From: Ophelia neglecta
Taxonomy: Eukaryota
DNA: 64,000 nucleotides
Reading direction: 5' to 3'
NCBI GenBank assembly: GCA_965285935.1
Contig: OZ260663.1
Location: forward strand, 48,608,001-48,672,000
The stretch's first letter is position 1; each line of letters begins with the position of its first letter. The position numbers were made by a program, and so were the translations under genes. The notes beneath the pieces are model-generated. The model was not told where the DNA came from and did no database searches. It saw nothing but the letters and a program-made list of their open reading frames with translations. Below, one piece after another: positions 3,201 through 15,200 of this stretch.

Positions 3201-6200
3201 TATTTGCCTTTAAACCAAAGTAAGGGCAAAGCTTATAATTCTGCATTTAGTGCTTGCATTGGGTACCCAAAATGCTACAAGTGGACTTACTTCCTGAGGA
3301 AAACAGAAAGGAAATAATGAGCTGTCCTCATGGCAGTTTCATAAGATGTTATGATGGTAACTTCACAATCAACCTGAAGAAAATACAGAAAAGATAATAA
3401 AGACAGTTTATTATCAAACACTTAAAAGCTTAAATCCTCTGTTTAATAAGAGTGTAATGTACATGAAATGTTCAATGTATCCTGCTTATCCTTTGAGCCA
3501 GATGTATTGACAGTTTTTTAAATATTGTACAATAATGGGCTCATATTGCTGACCTGGTCGGCCTTTTCTCCCTCCTTTGCCCTCCTTTCTTCTTCAGAAT
3601 TTGGAGAACCTGGTCGCTGGGGAGGTTCTTCTGGGACAGAAGGTAACTTGACCACACACTGAATCAATTCCAGCACAAGGGCTGTTACCATCTGGATTTG
3701 TTCCTCGGCATTAAGCCTATCAAAGAAGCAAATCAATGAGATCAGGCATGTTTACTGAAATAACATTACCAATTTTGCTAAATACTGGATATAAAACTAT
3801 CTTAGATGGTCACCAGCCCCAGCCCAATCTGGCATTGCAACATTATTTGTAATTCAATTATTTCATTAAATCCCAAAGTGCAATATACTTCTAACAGCCT
3901 GGATTACTTTCTGCTAGATAGAGTGAAGGGAAAAAATAAGAACAGGGTCATTAACTTTCAATATCGGTAGGCCCTACTGACATTCAGCAGGTTGTTGGTG
4001 TTGTTTGGGGTTTTACGTGGCTCTCAACACTTATATGGTCATATCTCCATGGTGCCTACTTGTGACAGTGGGCTCAATGCCCTCTTTATAGTGCTGCCTC
4101 ACTGGAGTACCTGCCATAGACACCAGACAGGGAACCCAACCCAGTCACATTATACTGACACCGGGTTGACCAGTCCTGATACTACCCCCAAAATGCCGGG
4201 TGCCTGGCAAGGGAGCTATCAATACCTATTCTTACGTCTTGGGTTTGATGCGATCAGGATTCAAACCCCGATCTCCCACTTGACACCCTAACCACTAGGC
4301 CACGCTTCGGGGGTTGACATTCAGCAGGCCCTGAGAATTTAGCATAAAAATGTGCTGCCGAAATAATGTTCTAGCCCATTGGGCAGGTTACAATTGATAG
4401 GCCCTAGGCCTACAGGTCCCTGCTCATTTCTTTCCCTGGTATGTCTTAGCATAGCTACCAATCCTTTGACAATATCATATACTATTGTAAAGGTCCTAAA
4501 ATTGTTCCATGTATTCATATTTTCTTTTATCTGAGATCCACTTTAACTACTGGTTGGTTATGTGTTTAACATGTAAGTAGTGGTTAGTGCGTATTTTGAA
4601 TTGCCTCTGGTGAAGCCCCCTAGTGACCAACTTTGGGTATTTGACCTCTGACCGGAAGCTAGGTCAAGCGTGTTAGTGTAAACATGGCTAGGATGGAGGT
4701 AGCATCTTCAAATGTAACTACCCAAGAATTAAGGAATTTTGAATGAAGTATAAACCTGGAATAAAGGTAATTTCATTTTTGAAGTAGTCATGCCTAACTT
4801 GCATTACTTTGAAAGGTGTTGTATGTAAAAACAATATAAGATTAACCTTTAAACTTGTGCTATATTTTTCCCGCCTTTGTACTTAGTAATCCTTGTGTAT
4901 AGGGTCATGTTATGCAGTTTAAATGGCAAGATATCTGATGTATGTTTGGAGTGTATTTTTTAACATGTATATTACTGGTTCTCTATAGAGAATTCGGAAG
5001 CCCATGTAATATTTTGGATCTTCTATGATTTGGGCTGTAATATTGGAAAGCTTGCAGGCAAGGATAATTTGTAATGGAGTACAATGTGGATTAGTACTTG
5101 CACTGTAATTAGTAGGTCAACCTGTATCACCTTGATGTACAGTTTGTCAGAGTGTAAATAATTTGGTGTGGAGCATTGTTATTTTGTGTAAGTGTACATG
5201 TAATGTTTGTGCACCTGCAGGTTAATTCTCTTAATTTACTGGTCCTTTGCAAAATTATGTGTGACTATGTATTGAAACCCACCTTTGTTTTGACTTTCAG
5301 TCTTACGACAATAACCGTAGCAATAAATGGATATCATTAGTAAAAGGACTTGGTTTTTGACTCGGCTAATGGTATAAACGGTTGCGGCGGTCACAGTAAG
5401 ACTTTACCAGATGTTTATGGGAAGAAGGAAAGGGAAGACTTAAACAGAAATTTAAATGAAGAAAGAACTATGGCTACATTAGAAGAATTACAGACAGCCT
5501 TTCAAGAGCACAACGATTTATTTGACAACCTAGCGACTCTGACAGACAGTATATACTACAACATCAACAATGAGAAGGATACAGGGTTGGCAGAGTCTCA
5601 ATTTGAGAATTTCACTCAAGACCTCACCTTGTTTAAGGCATCAGGAGAAAAAATTAGGGGTATGGCCTATTCCCAGCATCAAGTCAACTTGTTCCTTGCG
5701 GAATTTAATGGAAGGATGGACTATCTGCTAAAATGCAAAGAAGATACCAGAAATTTCCTGCAAAAAAGGCAAGCAGAGCTCAGGCAACTCCCCGTTGGAC
5801 ACCCTATCAACCGATATGATGTCCAGCCTGAGGACAGCATTTCCCAGGTAGGCCGGCGGACAAGTCACGTATCACTCAGAAACCACCCTGTGGGTCCCAA
5901 TGAGGGCACAGACGACGTTAGGCCTGAGGATAGCGTATCACAGACACGGTCACGCTCCTCACGGACCAGCTCTGTTAAATCAAGCGCCAGCCTCCTACGC
6001 CTTCAAGAGGAGCAGAAGCAAGCAGAAATCGCAGCTAGAACAGCGGCACTCGCTGAAAGGCATAGACTAGAGAGATCAAGGCTTGAGATGCAGAAAAGAA
6101 AAAGAATCAATGAGGAACTGCTAGAAAAACAGAAGGAAGAATTGAGACTTGAAAAACAGCGTCTAGAAGACGAAGAAGCAGCATTCCAGCTAGAGATAAA

Positions 6201-9200
6201 ACGTCAGGAAGAAATCTTTAAATTAAACACTGAAATGAATGTCAGCAGGGCAAAGTGCCAAGTCTTGGAAAAGTATGAAGACAAGAGAGAAAACATCTCA
6301 TCAACTAATCATCCACAGTCAGGTGTGAGGGTTCCTACTTACATCTCAACCCCACACTTTAATTACCAAGGGCATGACAGACATCTCAGACAAACGAGTG
6401 ACAGTGTGACTGCACATGAAGCTGCCCAAGCACAGTATGATGACAGGGGATCCCTCCAAGGTGGCTCCATCACCAGGCAAGATCGACTGTCATCAACAGA
6501 AAGTCAAGTGCCCACCAATCACACGAGGACCAGCTTGGATCCTGGGGTACGTACACCAATCTCTGACAGCAGCACACTGCTTGCTAGTGCACTCGATGGA
6601 TTGGCTGATAGGTTGGTAAATCGTGACAACTTGCCAAGGATGATGCCAGAAAAATTCGGAGGTGACCTGATGCAATATTCACATTGGATTCAATCATTTG
6701 AGACCATCATTGAAAGGAATGCTGCAGCGGTGAGCCAGAAAATGTTTTTCCTGGGAAAGTGCACAACGGGCGAAGCCCATAATGCAATCCACGGGTTTTT
6801 GGCCCTAAACAATGAAGATGCTTATCAGAAGGCTAGAGCTACTCTTCAGAAGCGCTATGGGGACAAATATCTCCTGGCAAAGGAGTGTAAAAGAAAAATA
6901 AGAAACTGGCCACAAGTTAAATATGGCGATGGAAAAGGGCTTAGAGATTTTTCTGACTTCCTGATGCACTGCAAGACTGCAATGCTGACATCTAAGCACC
7001 TTGCTTCACTTGACACTGAAGAAGAAAATGCCAAGATGCTTGAGAAACTCCCCAAGAACATTATTGACAGGTGGAGCCGGATAGTTGACAAGTGGCTGAA
7101 CTGTGGTGACGAGGATAAACAGTGCTACCCAACCCTGGCAGCTTTCTGCGATTTTCTTGAGCAGGAGGCCAGAATAGCATGTAATACGGTTAACATGAGA
7201 CAACCTCCCCCAGCAGAGAGAAGAGAAGAATCAAGATCAGGCAGAGCCCCCCCACGGAGAAAACCAGCTGGTTGTTTTTCAACCGCAGCCATGATCGAGG
7301 AGGTCCCAACGGAACCTATTGGTGTTCATGCGCTGGCAACAGTCACCCGGCCTCAGCAGAATGACAGGGGCTGCATACTCTGTGGGCAAGCTCATAGCCT
7401 GGAACATTGCAGACAGTTCATCAAGATGACCCTAGAAGAAAGAAAATCATTACTTAGAAAAAAGGGCTATTGCTATGGATGCATGGCAGGACGACATCTG
7501 TCCAGAACATGTAATCAGAGAAAAGTGTGCAAAACATGCGACGGCCTTCATCCAACTTTGCTGCATGAAGATTTCCCTCCTGGAAGGGCACTTGCTGCAC
7601 CTAGCCGTGAAACCGAGAGGAGGGTTGTTTCCCACTGCACCGAGGCTGGGATTGCTGGCATTGTATCACATAAAACAGATACTGGGGACTCATGTGGGCA
7701 CTATAATTCCATGATAGTGCCAGTGAAATTGTGTCATGAAGACTACCCAGAAGAAGCAGTCATAGTGTACGCTTTATTAGACGATCAGTCCAACTCAACT
7801 TTTATCTCTCAAAAAACCTTGACCAGGCTCAGGGCTAGTGGAGAGCCTGTGAAGATTAGGTTGGCCACCATGTTAGCAGAAAGGGTGATAGATAGCAAGG
7901 TGGTGCATGGACTTTCTGTATGCAACCCCAAGGATGATCTGTCAATTCCGCTCCCCGGAGCATACCTGCGCCAGACAATACCTGCTGATAGAACACTTAT
8001 TCCGCGTAGGGAGACTGCACGGGAGTGGCCCCATCTCATGGAGGTGGCAGATCAGCTACTGCCGTACAGGGAGGATATTGAAATAGGCCTACTCATTGGT
8101 TTAGACTGCCCCCATGCAATGAAACCCAGGGAGCTTATTCCAGGAAAGGACAATGACCCATGGGCTGTTCGCACCTCCCTTGGATGGGGAGTTGCTGGAA
8201 TAATGGACCCCTCTCATGCAAGGCTGAGGAGTGTTGCCAATGACAGACCATGCCACCTGGCTTTCCGGACTCATGCCACTGAAGTGAGCCCAATGGAGGT
8301 TCATAAAATGTTCGACCAGGACTTCCATGAAGTGAAATCACTAGAGGCATACTCAGTGGAAGATGGCCGGTTTCTGGAGCAGATCTCAAAGGGCATTCAT
8401 ACAAGGCCTGATGGGCACTTCGAGACCCCCTTGCCTCTGAAAGACGATGCCCATTTGCCAAACAACAAGAGTGTGGCGCTCAAGAGACTTTCTGGGTTGA
8501 AGGGAAAGCTCATGAGGGATAGCCAATATAGGGAGGACTACTCAAAGTTCATGACAGACATGATAAGCCATGGATATGCTGAGCCTGTACCAACTGAAGA
8601 GTCAACCACAGCTAAAGGGAGAACATGGTATATTCCACACCATGGCGTGTACCACCCCAAGAAGCCTGGAAAGATCAGAGTGGTATTTGATTGCAGTTCC
8701 GAATACAGAGGCGAAGCACTAAATCGCCACTTGCTACAAGGCCCAGATCTAATAAATAATTTAACTGGGGTCTTGTGCAGATTTCGGCAAGAACCCGTCG
8801 CATTGAGCTGCGACATTGAAGGGATGTTCCACCAGGTTGGTGTCAACCAAGAAGACAGAGACCTCCTGCGCTTCCTTTGGTGGGGCGATGATAAGCTCAC
8901 AGACCCAAAGGAGTATAGGATGACGGTGCACTTATTTGGCGCCACCTCCTCTCCAGGATGCGCAAACTATGCACTAAAACAGACTGCAGACAGGTATGAA
9001 GCGGAATGCGGCAAAGCTGCTGCAGACTTTGTCCGAAATAACTTTTACGTAGACGACGGCCTGAAGTCCGTAGCCACCCCAAATGAAGCCCTGCAGCTTG
9101 TGGAGAGCAGCCGCACCCTGTGTGCAAGGGGTGGATTCAACTTGCATAAGTACCTGTGCAACAACAAAGAAGTTTTGGCAGCAATCCCACCTGATCTCAG

Positions 9201-12200
9201 AGCCAGGGATGCTCAAAATCTAGACCTGACCTGTGACTCTCTACCAATGGAAAGAACACTCGGCATACAGTGGTGCATTGAGTCTGATACATTTCAGTTT
9301 CGTATTGAGGTCAAGGATAGGCCACTTACACGTCGTGGAATCCTCTCGACAGTCAGCTCAGTGTTTGACCCGCTTGGTCTTGTATCCCCCTTTGTGCTTG
9401 TGGGCAAACAAATACTACAGGAAATGGTCCGTGATGGCAGAGATTGGGATGAACCAATCCCTGAAGAACTGAAGGCTCGGTGGGAGAGATGGCGCTGTGA
9501 GTTGCCAGAACTGGCAAAAATCAGAATCCCAAGATGTTTCAAGAACGGCAAAATTGACAGACCAACCAAGATAGAGCTGCACAACTTTTCAGACGCGAGT
9601 TTGAACGGTTATGGACAATGCAGTTATGTACGACTACTGGACAATCACGGCAATGTATCCTGTTCACTAGTTATGGGAAAGTCCCGTGTTGCTCCTTCCA
9701 AGGCGATTACCGTTCCCCGTCTCGAGCTGACAGCTGCTGTGGTATCGGTTCGCATAGGAAGTTTCCTTCAGAAAGAACTCGATTATAAAGATATTCAGCA
9801 CTTTTGCTGGACTGATAGCAAGGTTGTGCTTGGTTACATCGCTAACGAGTCCCGTAGGTTTCACATCTTTGTTGCCAATCGGGTGCAGCAAATTAGAAGC
9901 AGCAGTGATGTAAATGCATGGCACTATGTGGACACAAAGAAAAACCCTGCAGACATTGCCTCACGGGGCATGTGTGCTGCAGATCTGACAGGGGCTGATG
10001 ATTGGTGGTATGGTCCTTCATTTTTGAGATCTTCTGCACCCCTGCCCTTGACACAGGAAAGCATGCCAGTGTCACCAGAGGATCCAGAGGTGAAGAGAGT
10101 GGTTGCCCACACCTCCCGGGCTAGGCCCGTTTTCTGCGATCTATTGGACAGAATTGCCAGATTTTCTGATTGGCACCATGCCAGAAGGGCTGTGGCTGTA
10201 TGCCTGAAATACAAGGAAATCCTTAAGCAAAGAATCAGTGAAAGGAACTCTGAAAGGCCCCCCCGCAATAAAGGGCGCCCTGTGTACCGCTGTGCAGATG
10301 TAGAAACAATGAAAGAAGCAGAAAGAATCATTGTTTCAGCTGTCCAGAAAAGGGCATTTCCTGGAGAGTTGACAGTCTTGAGGACTATCAACACATATGC
10401 CTCGGACCGACAACAATGCAGAAATCGCAATATTGCACTCAAAGAAGGCAGCTCCTTATACCGCCTTGATCCCTACCTAGGTACAGATGGACTTGTGCGT
10501 GTAGGGGGTAGGATACGAAGGGCCAATGTACCACGTGACCTGGCACACCCAGTAATATTACCAAAGGATTGTCATGTGACCCGGATGGTCATCCAACATT
10601 ACCATAGGCGAGCTTGTCATTCAGGCCGTGGGATTACTCTAAATGAGATAAGAGCTGCAGGGTACTGGATCTTGAAGGCCAGAACAGCTGTCACTTCCTA
10701 CCTGTGGAACTGTGTTAAGTGCAAGAAGCTCCGAAGTCAGACGGTGTCTCAGAAGATGGCAGACCTGCCTGAAGACAGAGTGGAGCCCTCAGAACCATTC
10801 ACCTATAGTGCTGTGGACTTCTTTGGGCCATTTTACATTAAGGAGGGACGCAGTGAGCGAAAAAGATGGGGTGTAATCTTCACGTGTATGGCGTCACGTG
10901 CCTTACATCTAGAGTCAGCAAACACCATGTCAACCGACTCCTTTATAAATGCATACAGACGTTTTGTTGGCCGGCGAGGACCCATAAGACAACTGCGCTC
11001 TGACCGAGGCACAAATTTTGTTGGGGCTCGCTCTGAGCTCGCAGCAGCCTTAGCAGAAATGGACAACCAAAAGATCGCTGCTGAACTGCTTAGAGATAAC
11101 TGTGACTGGGTATCCTTTAAGATGAACCCTCCTCATGCTAGTCACATGGGAGGCGTTTGGGAGAGGTTGATCAGGGCCGTGAGAGCGGTGCTCGCAGCTT
11201 TGTTGGACGCCCATGGCAGTCGCATGGACGACGAACAACTAAGAACTCTCCTGGTGGAAGCAGAAGCAGTAGTCAACAGCAGGCCGATATCCTGCCCTGA
11301 CAACTCAGATCCCGATTCAGGTGAGGCACTGTCACCAAGCCAGATTTTGACATTAAAATCAAAGGTGATACTTCCTCCTCCTGGCGTGTTCCTGAAAGAG
11401 GATCTGTACTGTCGAAAGCGCTGGCGTGTGGTTCAATTCCTGGCCAACCAGTTTTGGAGCAGGTGGCGTGCCGAATACCTAACTACTCTGCAAGAAAGAA
11501 AGAAGTGGAATAAAAGGCATCCAAACCTCCAGGTTGGGGATATAGTCTTGGTTAAAGACGAATGCACTACGAGATGTCAATGGCCAATGGCACGCGTGGA
11601 CAAGACCTACCTCAGTGCGGACGGATTGGTACGAAAGGTCAGTGTCATGATGGGGAAGTCAACCTACGATCGTCCTGTGCACAAGCTGGTTCTACTTTTG
11701 ACACCGGGAAGCCCCGTCGAGGAGCCTAGTACAATTGACATTTGAATATACATTTTTGAGTAAATGTGTTTTTAAAAGTGGTTTTAAATATGCTTGATTA
11801 CGTGCTTCCTTAATCTGATGAACAAAGAACTTTTATTTACGACTCAGAGATGACAGTGTCATGACGAACGGGTGATTGAGTAAATAAGTCGATAGGTTAT
11901 AGACTATATTTAGGGGAGCCATGTAAAGGTCCTAAAATTGTTCCATGTATTCATATTTTCTTTTATCTGAGATCCACTTTAACTACTGGTTGGTTATGTG
12001 TTTAACATGTAAGTAGTGGTTAGTGCGTATTTTGAATTGCCTCTGGTGAAGCCCCCTAGTGACCAACTTTGGGTATTTGACCTCTGACCGGAAGCTAGGT
12101 CAAGCGTGTTAGTGTAAACATGGCTAGGATGGAGGTAGCATCTTCAAATGTAACTACCCAAGAATTAAGGAATTTTGAATGAAGTATAAACCTGGAATAA

Positions 12201-15200
12201 AGGTAATTTCATTTTTGAAGTAGTCATGCCTAACTTGCATTACTTTGAAAGGTGTTGTATGTAAAAACAATATAAGATTAACCTTTAAACTTGTGCTATA
12301 TTTTTCCCGCCTTTGTACTTAGTAATCCTTGTGTATAGGGTCATGTTATGCAGTTTAAATGGCAAGATATCTGATGTATGTTTGGAGTGTATTTTTTAAC
12401 ATGTATATTACTGGTTCTCTATAGAGAATTCGGAAGCCCATGTAATATTTTGGATCTTCTATGATTTGGGCTGTAATATTGGAAAGCTTGCAGGCAAGGA
12501 TAATTTGTAATGGAGTACAATGTGGATTAGTACTTGCACTGTAATTAGTAGGTCAACCTGTATCACCTTGATGTACAGTTTGTCAGAGTGTAAATAATTT
12601 GGTGTGGAGCATTGTTATTTTGTGTAAGTGTACATGTAATGTTTGTGCACCTGCAGGTTAATTCTCTTAATTTACTGGTCCTTTGCAAAATTATGTGTGA
12701 CTATGTATTGAAACCCACCTTTGTTTTGACTTTCAGTCTTACGACAATAACCGTAGCAATAAATGGATATCATTAGTAAAAGGACTTGGTTTTTGACTCG
12801 GCTAATGGTATAAACGGTTGCGGCGGTCACAACTATAAAACATACACAACTTAGCTATAATTAATGTGTTCTCGGTGAGAGGTAATAAAATGCTGCTTTT
12901 TCTATCTCAGGACAATGTAAGAATATGATATCTTCCATCATATTGATTTAATCCCCTGCCCAGTGACCATGGGTGCACTTTCTACCAATTTATTAAAATC
13001 CACATTACCTGTAGCTTCTGAGATTCTTTTTGCTCGAGGGCAACCGGGCAAGTGACGAGAGAATATCTTCTAATAACAGCTGCCGGTGTTTTTCATATCT
13101 TGAAAAAATCTATAAGAAAAAAGACTAGTGATGCATATATAACGCTATAAAAATCTCACAGCATTTTACATTTCATCCTGCTTTCAATAAAAAGTATAAA
13201 AAAAAGAGTTATAATAAATATTTCACATACAGTTTTGATTATTTTGGCAGTCCCATGGTTTGAACTGACATATAGTGTTGACTTGTAATAAAAATTACAA
13301 CACGACAAAGCATGTTTCAATTTTTGACATTAGCGGAGAATTTGCAAGTACTTAAAAATAATACCCGTGAAAGTGTGTACTTCTTAGAACTTGAAAATAA
13401 TACTCACACTTGTGACCAGCTTGAGAGAATTAAGTTGGAGCTCACTGATATTTTCCACAAAAAATGGAGCAACTGCTAGTGTTGAGGTCTGTGGAGAGAA
13501 TTATCATTAACAAACTGATTATAGAACATGACAAAAATATGGGGGAATATATGGAATGACAAACTTATTTTCTTTTTGGGAAAAAAGTGGCAAATTTTAA
13601 CTTGTTTTTTTTTCCTGAATAAATGGTTTTCTTCCCTAAATATTTTGTTGATAACATCCATTACCTGAAGAATGACAGTGTCAGTGAGTTCTTGAACATC
13701 AATTAATTCAGACAATGTTCCAATCAAGTCTGTTAGCTTGTTGTACAGCATGACAGTGCTGCGATGTTTACTAGAACCGGCTCTTGCTCTCTTTTGCTTC
13801 ATGTTTCCAACAATGCCACCTGCAATGCAAATTAGATGCTAAAGTGACATGGTTAATATAGACTTTATATAACAAAACACTGATAATAAGATTAGAAACT
13901 GTGATGGTACCTATAAACGTAAATTGGAAAAAATATATTCATTTAACAATCAGAATGACATTTATAACGCCTCCCCCTCTAAGCAAGTTGGAAAACTTTA
14001 CTTTCAGGAAATATGGTTAATTTTGTATGGAAAGTGCACAGATATCTGCTTTTCCAACTGACTAGTGAGCATAAAATGAACATTTCTTGCCTATAAATGG
14101 TTTGCTTGGGTATTGAAAACAAAGGCAACTTAAGTTGAGGATGTTGACAATATTTCATGCAATTTCAGTTATATTGCATATCTATGACAAAATAAAATAA
14201 AGCTCTTACTTTTGTTTTTGGGATCTATTCTGTATACTGGATCAAACTCTGGAAATATTGTGTTTGTTAACTGTGTTTTTGCCATCCTTATAAGTCTTTC
14301 TATAACATCTTCAATATACACTTCTTTAGGCATGTCTAAGGATGTCATGATATACAGTGCAGTCAGTCCAGCATCAAGGGCTGCTATGACTTTTTCTACA
14401 GTAACTTCCTGCCAAAGTTGCTCGTCTTCTGGGCCATCCTCCTGGTAAGAAAACAAAAGTACACTTTGTGTTGAGTATCAACTCATTTTGATGCAGCTGG
14501 ATTCTTATGTAATATGATGAGATCTGTTAAGTTTTGATCAAGAACACTATATAGAATGCCCAGCAAGAGGAGAAGGAGAGTAATCATTTCTGTCCATCAT
14601 GAAATATGATTAACCAACAAAACAACAGAAATGTTACCGGGTGTTGTTAAACAATCCAACATAACCATAAAGTGCCATACGAGACAGACAGAGCAGGACA
14701 CAGCCAAGTGCTCCATACCCTTTTCAAAAAGGGGGCATATAACACTTGGAATGAATACTAAATGTGAAAATGACGAGAATACCAGATTTTATATGCCAGT
14801 TTGCAGTACCCCATTTGCCATAAGCTGATACCCCAGTTAGCCTTAACCTGTTTTTTTTAAAGGTGGAATTGTGCTTTTTGGCAAGAAGTGGGCTACACTA
14901 CCTGGTTTCATACTAAATTGCAAAGCACTTACTCCATATGATGGAACCATACGACATCCATCTCTGATGTTGTACTGAAGAATTGTTAGCACCTTTACTA
15001 GCTTTTCATATGGAACCTAAAAATACAAAATTTTCATAAAAGCATATTATTGCTAAGAATTACACAACAGGTATGTTAGGAATGGTTTTAATCAAACTGA
15101 AAGTCATTTCATGATATCCATCCATCATCAGCGTGATTTCTAAGCAAAAGGTGGGGGCAACAAGTAAGGGAGTTAAAAAAGTGGAAAAAAATTTGGTGGA

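Follow-up and report, generated by a model that had tools for sequence, protein, structure and literature searches.

Several routes are known by which LTR retrotransposons prime reverse transcription without an intact host tRNA. In self-priming of the Tf1/sushi group (Ty3/gypsy: Tf1, Tf2, sushi, Tcn1 lineage) there is no tRNA primer-binding site (PBS); an 11-nt PBS directly after the 5' LTR is complementary to the continuous first 11 nt of the element's own mRNA, the primer-PBS helix encloses a stem-loop in R-U5, and a cut at the end of the duplex, made by RNase H in Tf1, is needed to free the 3' OH (PMC7175516; PMC6317226). Self-priming has also been inferred, from sequence alone, for plant TAR elements (Ty1/copia), a lineage outside Tf1/sushi in which the complement is continuous and no intron is involved (PMC6317226). 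In half-tRNA priming (copia and the Osser/Bianca lineages) the PBS lacks TGG and the primer's 3' end is made by cleavage inside an RNA, but that primer is a host tRNA shared between families (PMC6317226). In retroviruses such as HTLV-1 a splice donor lies in the LTR-derived leader (in or after R), but the intron ends far downstream in the body, splicing makes subgenomic mRNA, and it has no role in forming the primer.

How BEL/Pao elements prime reverse transcription is poorly documented, and the main survey of the group contains no mention of a PBS, tRNA or intron (PMC3118150). Our full-text searches found self-priming described only for Tf1/sushi, Tcn1 and TAR elements and nothing on an intron in an LTR or on a primer formed by splicing, although most subscription journals lay outside the searches and an older description is therefore not excluded. 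Here we examine a BEL/Pao element in a 64,000-nucleotide stretch of the Ophelia neglecta genome (contig OZ260663.1, positions 48,608,001 to 48,672,000; hereafter the window), in which a first-pass annotation had proposed that the PBS is complementary to a splice junction formed inside the element's own LTR. As in Tf1, the 11 nt directly after the 5' LTR are complementary to LTR-derived RNA of the element, but here the complement is split by a GT-AG intron (170-530 nt in six of the seven families examined), both splice sites lie inside the LTR and upstream of the PBS, each PBS follows its own LTR, and the superfamily is a different one.

Anatomy of the element and the split complement

The window holds one intact LTR retrotransposon with the following features (window coordinates; a slash in sequences below marks a splice junction or border).

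4481-4485 (no strand): target-site duplication ACTAT, repeated at 12832-12836
4486-5395 (forward strand): 5' LTR, 910 bp, TGT..ACA ends, 100% identical to the 3' LTR
4486-4766 (forward): upstream LTR part holding the promoter and exon 1, with the transcript start inferred only; a block around 4648-4705 looks conserved with a sister lineage
4762-4766 (forward): exon-1 share of the primer core (TAAAG)
4767-5300 (forward): LTR intron, 534 nt, GT-AG with a T-rich tract
5301-5306 (forward): exon-2 share of the primer core (TCTTAC), with the predicted primer 3' end at C5306
5307-5345 (forward): inferred R region, holding the only AATAAA of this LTR part (5322-5327); the 3' limit is approximate
5346-5395 (forward): inferred U5, which with R folds into a long stem-loop enclosed by the primer-PBS helix
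5396-5406 (forward): PBS core, 11 nt, exact complement of the splice junction
5407-5418 (forward): possible extra pairing with 4750-4759 across two 2-nt bulges, specific to this family and weakly supported
5470-11745 (forward): single gag-pol reading frame from the ATG at 5470, 2091 aa, with BEL/Pao domains
11912-11921 (forward): polypurine tract AGGGGAGCCA, nearly invariant in all related families read
11922-12831 (forward): 3' LTR, 910 bp, with its own copy of the intron at 12203-12736

The polyprotein carries Peptidase_A17 (E 6.7e-48), DUF1759, RVT_1, Integrase_H2C2 and DUF5641, and its nearest proteins are BEL/Pao polyproteins of sea anemones, shrimps, corals and a starfish, so that the element belongs to BEL/Pao (Belpaoviridae, Semotivirus-like) and, its domains not being those of a gypsy element, is not a member of the Tf1/sushi clade by descent. 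The LTR ends, the short target duplication and the polypurine tract are as expected for such an element. The window's own protein is not on record. The 762-Mb genome holds five copies at 99% identity or more, each with its own 5-bp duplication, and all 10 LTRs of these five young copies keep the intron; some copies have stop codons in pol.

The observation made in the first-pass annotation was confirmed in every coordinate. The 5' LTR ends in GGTCACA at 5395 and is followed directly by GTAAGACTTTA, the donor is AAG/GTAATT at 4766/4767, and the acceptor is a T-rich tract plus CAG ending at 5300. Joining 4762-4766 to 5301-5306 gives the exact reverse complement of 5396-5406 (11 nt), whereas the best match of unspliced RNA anchored at the LTR border is 8 nt. 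To estimate the chance level, random 25-mers from the element's own interior were tried against any GT..AG pair in the LTR with the match anchored at the LTR border, and 11 nt or more were reached in 24 of 20000 trials. On simple splice scores that ignore the PBS the donor ranks 2nd of 83 GT sites and the acceptor 1st of 46 AG sites in the LTR. The predicted duplex energy is -21.3 kcal/mol when spliced and -10.6 kcal/mol when unspliced. Joined sequences were used for counting and folding only and were not submitted to database searches.

The first-pass annotation had also extended the pairing to about 21 bp, with CTGG opposite 5407-5410 and ATAAAC opposite 5413-5418. These stretches can pair, but pairing beyond the 11-nt core is nominally unusual only in this family (p about 0.015) and is no better than shuffles in five others, and the extended duplex was therefore rejected as a conserved feature. 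An alternative donor at LTR position 7 (window 4487-4494), where the LTR's own start TGTAAAG/GT repeats the exon-1 end plus GT, would give a 12-nt match when joined to 5301; its GTCCTA donor fits the consensus poorly and a processed LTR (see below) shows the junction at 4766, so that we judged it a coincidence of the TAAAG/GT motif.

Intron loss, host RNA and sister families

Splicing between 4766 and 5301 had been named beforehand as a point on which the proposal could fail. RNA reads were not examined, so that the evidence for splicing rests on sequence signals and on one processed LTR, which was found by a BLAST search of the genome with the LTR. This locus (L012) is a diverged 379-bp solo LTR with its own 5-bp duplication TATAC, in which LTR position 281 abuts position 816 exactly (...GGAATAAAG/TCTTATGAC...). 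Its closest relative, a second locus of the same sister lineage (L011), is 89.6% identical to L012 upstream of the junction, both are about 73% identical to the window, and L011 keeps the intron with the donor AAG/GTAAAT. The intron was therefore present in the common ancestor and was lost precisely in L012, as would be produced by reverse transcription of an RNA spliced in its 3' LTR. An inserted repeat was ruled out because the intron sequence occurs only in the LTRs of the window family and in L011. L011 (2017-3516) and another old LTR relative, L014 (927-1500), are interrupted by unrelated insertions, and the acceptor of L014 has decayed from AG to GG.

An equally good match of the PBS to a host tRNA would also have spoken against the proposal. 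The PBS does not start with TGG but with GTAAGA, its 18-mer occurs in the genome only in the five copies of the element, near-matches equal the control count, and Rfam returned no match; the host tRNA set itself was not scanned. One near-match on contig C8 (ATAAGATTTTACCAGATG) that looked like a compensated PBS was rejected since it is not next to an LTR end.

Absence of the complementarity from sister families was the remaining condition under which the proposal was to be abandoned, and this was examined in relatives of the polyprotein. A protein search gave thousands of BEL/Pao relatives, of which ten were selected for retrieval of their DNA. One (P0002) gave no DNA, and three were unreadable at the key place: L075 is 5'-truncated and only its 3' LTR was seen, whereas the LTRs of L081 (Acanthaster) and the middle of the L082 LTR (Actinia tenebrosa) read N. 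The other six proteins yielded seven readable loci (L076, L077, L078, L079, L080, L083, L084 and L085, with L077 and L078 from one protein), all of which follow the rule. The families were sampled only from the nearest relatives of the element, and twenty related elements of the same genome were not included. The cores, each the complement of its own PBS, are as follows.

Family B (L076 and L079): AGAG/TTTTTAC, 11 nt
Family C (L077 and L078): CGATAT/TTTAC, 11 nt
Family E (L083): AGATAT/TTTAC, 11 nt
Family D (L080, Penaeus chinensis): TGAG/TTTAAC, 10 nt
Family G (L085): AATCG/TTTGAC, 11 nt
Family F (L084): ATTCGTTCTAC, unsplit, in a 328-bp LTR, 11 nt

Together with the window family the rule thus held in all seven BEL/Pao families whose LTR and adjacent bases could be read, six with a split and one with a continuous complement, and in every case the pairing stops at the LTR border, where a primer's 3' end must sit. 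Chance levels per family are 5e-4 to 7e-3. Polyproteins are 43-53% identical between families and the LTRs show no nucleotide similarity except between B and B2, while the polypurine tract and LTR start, (A/G)GGGAGCCA/TGT, are almost invariant. Families C and E differ by a matched pair of changes at duplex position 11. In all six split families (seven LTRs scored) the PBS-defined donor ranks 1-2 of 37-83 GT sites and the acceptor 1-4 of 21-46 AG sites within the LTR, and across families the duplex energy is -16 to -21 kcal/mol when spliced against -2 to -11 kcal/mol when unspliced. Family F is closest to G (53%) and looks like a lineage that lost the intron as L012 did, yet it has identical LTRs and an open frame; the intron can hence be lost and is not indispensable.

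After the primer end each family has exactly one AATAAA or ATTAAA, 21-36 nt on (91 nt in D), and the LTR end lies 89-176 nt from the primer end, which fits R starting at the base after the primer followed by U5. Spliced leaders that start at the core fold, in the minimum-energy structure of all six LTRs tested, with the primer-PBS helix closing an R-U5 stem-loop. A further AATAAA sits at window 4760-4765 in the last bases of exon 1, overlapping the primer core, and is found only in this family and its sister lineage; whether it is ever used as a poly(A) signal is not known.

Proposed self-priming by a spliced RNA

The interpretation of the first-pass annotation, that the primer is assembled by splicing, is supported by this comparative evidence, and all three of the conditions that it had set for its own rejection came out in its favour as far as they could be examined. 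The reading that we favour, with reasonable though not full confidence, is that this young element primes reverse transcription with its own RNA, as Tf1 does, and not with a tRNA. In this view transcription starts in the 5' LTR at or upstream of 4762, and the spliceosome removes 4767-5300 from the leader, which creates TAAAG/TCTTAC. This sequence would fold back onto 5396-5406, and a cut after C5306, presumably by the element's RNase H, would leave a 3' OH paired to the first base after the LTR. DNA synthesis would then copy 5395 back to 5307 (U5 plus a short R with the AATAAA at 5322) and jump to the 3' R. Since U3, including the intron, would be copied only from the RNA's 3' end, splicing of the 5' copy would be invisible to progeny, whereas splicing of the 3' copy would give intron-less LTRs such as L012. 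Copying of the primer by the plus strand would rewrite the PBS in each cycle, which would keep junction and PBS matched and explain both the exact match and its change from family to family. What the analysis itself demonstrates is the anatomy, the complementarity and its conservation with changed letters, the quality of the splice sites and one precise intron loss; splicing in living cells, the transcript start, the primer-releasing cut (RNase H cleavage was not assayed) and priming itself are inferred, and whether the primer acts in cis or in trans is not known.

Some observations sit less easily with this reading. The intron in the 3' LTR has to escape splicing for progeny to keep it, and nothing explains why exact pairing stops at 11 nt (10 in D) unless the RNA starts there, which would mean a first exon of only 4-6 nt. 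The transcript start is not known; in four of seven families, read by eye, the core begins at a pyrimidine-A step, which is only suggestive of such a start, while initiator-like motifs 30-100 nt upstream suggest a longer exon 1 instead, and we do not choose between the two. In the window family a TATAAA at 4749 would, if it were a functional TATA box, place the start at about 4779, inside the intron and downstream of the donor, but the motif is absent from the other families and was rejected as a conserved TATA box. A more far-reaching version, which we regard as possible but unlikely, is that splicing licenses reverse transcription in an old, multi-phylum BEL/Pao clade: the mRNA would start only 4-6 nt before the donor, so that after splicing its first 11 nt are the primer, exactly as in Tf1, and only RNAs that have passed through the spliceosome at their 5' end while keeping the identical 3' intron could replicate.

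Among the alternatives, the least unlikely is that the junction-PBS helix is a regulatory or packaging structure of the spliced leader, for example marking spliced against unspliced RNA or controlling translation, with reverse transcription primed by something not yet identified. The helix is indeed predicted in the spliced leaders and there is no biochemical evidence for priming here; however, in seven families the pairing ends exactly at the LTR border, which is set by where minus-strand synthesis starts, no other candidate PBS lies next to the LTR, and the exact 10-11 nt match is what copying of a primer into the PBS would maintain. Self-priming without splicing, either by looping out the 534 nt between two half-sites of unspliced RNA or by a primer supplied from transcripts of intron-less LTR copies, is considered very unlikely. 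Family F and L012 show that unsplit versions exist, but unspliced duplexes are weak, and this reading leaves unexplained why the half-sites sit at top-ranked GT and AG sites with T-rich tracts in six families. In addition, no intron-less LTR of the window family was found, the junction of L012 differs at the primer's last base, and copying a looped primer would not regenerate the PBS.

Binding of a host RNA, such as an internal tRNA fragment as in copia, with an incidental match to the LTR junction, is still less likely given the results of the tRNA-related searches above, which did not include a scan of the host tRNA set, and given that seven families have seven different PBS cores, each matching its own LTR. 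Chance resemblance picked out of many windows could be entertained for a single family with a chance level of about 1e-3, but the rule held in every one of seven independent families in which it could be checked, the product of the per-family chance levels is below 1e-15, and this explanation is effectively refuted.

If the favoured reading is right, self-priming extends to the third LTR-retrotransposon superfamily, a spliceosomal intron sits inside an LTR with a direct role in replication, and LTR annotation tools that look for tRNA PBSs would miss the primer site of these elements. The reading also predicts a simple rule, namely that the best donor and best acceptor in the LTR, when joined, give the PBS, which can be used to annotate such elements and to date intron losses, and it raises the question of how the same intron is spliced at the 5' end but spared at the 3' end.

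Possible related borders and neighbouring repeats

Further sites in the same genome (C numbers denote its contigs) may belong to related elements. At C8:45544171-45544190, ACCGTCACA is followed by the same 11-nt PBS core as in the window element but with a different LTR end, and may represent a further lineage sharing the primer. Two repeated strings, GCGGTCACA+ATAGGTTTTTA and GCAGTCACA+ATAACATTTTA, occur four times each (C1:37625825, C9:1606850, C9:47983284, C12:44747664; and C3:108436, C3:1237754, C3:1621627, C12:37243154) and look like LTR-end/PBS borders of other BEL/Pao families with non-tRNA PBSs. Related BEL/Pao RT hits with identical scores are spaced 6610 bp apart (three units, C12:73745326-73760051) and 6897 bp apart (two units, C9:17280096-17288468) and are probably tandem arrays of elements sharing single LTRs. 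An irregular tandem array at C2:122174367-122188409 carries GAAAGACCTTACCAGATG about every 0.9-2.7 kb and is a satellite-like repeat unrelated to the element. Next to the family G element, an 87-bp-period tandem repeat (L085:12263-12996) lies inside a NACHT/LRR gene.
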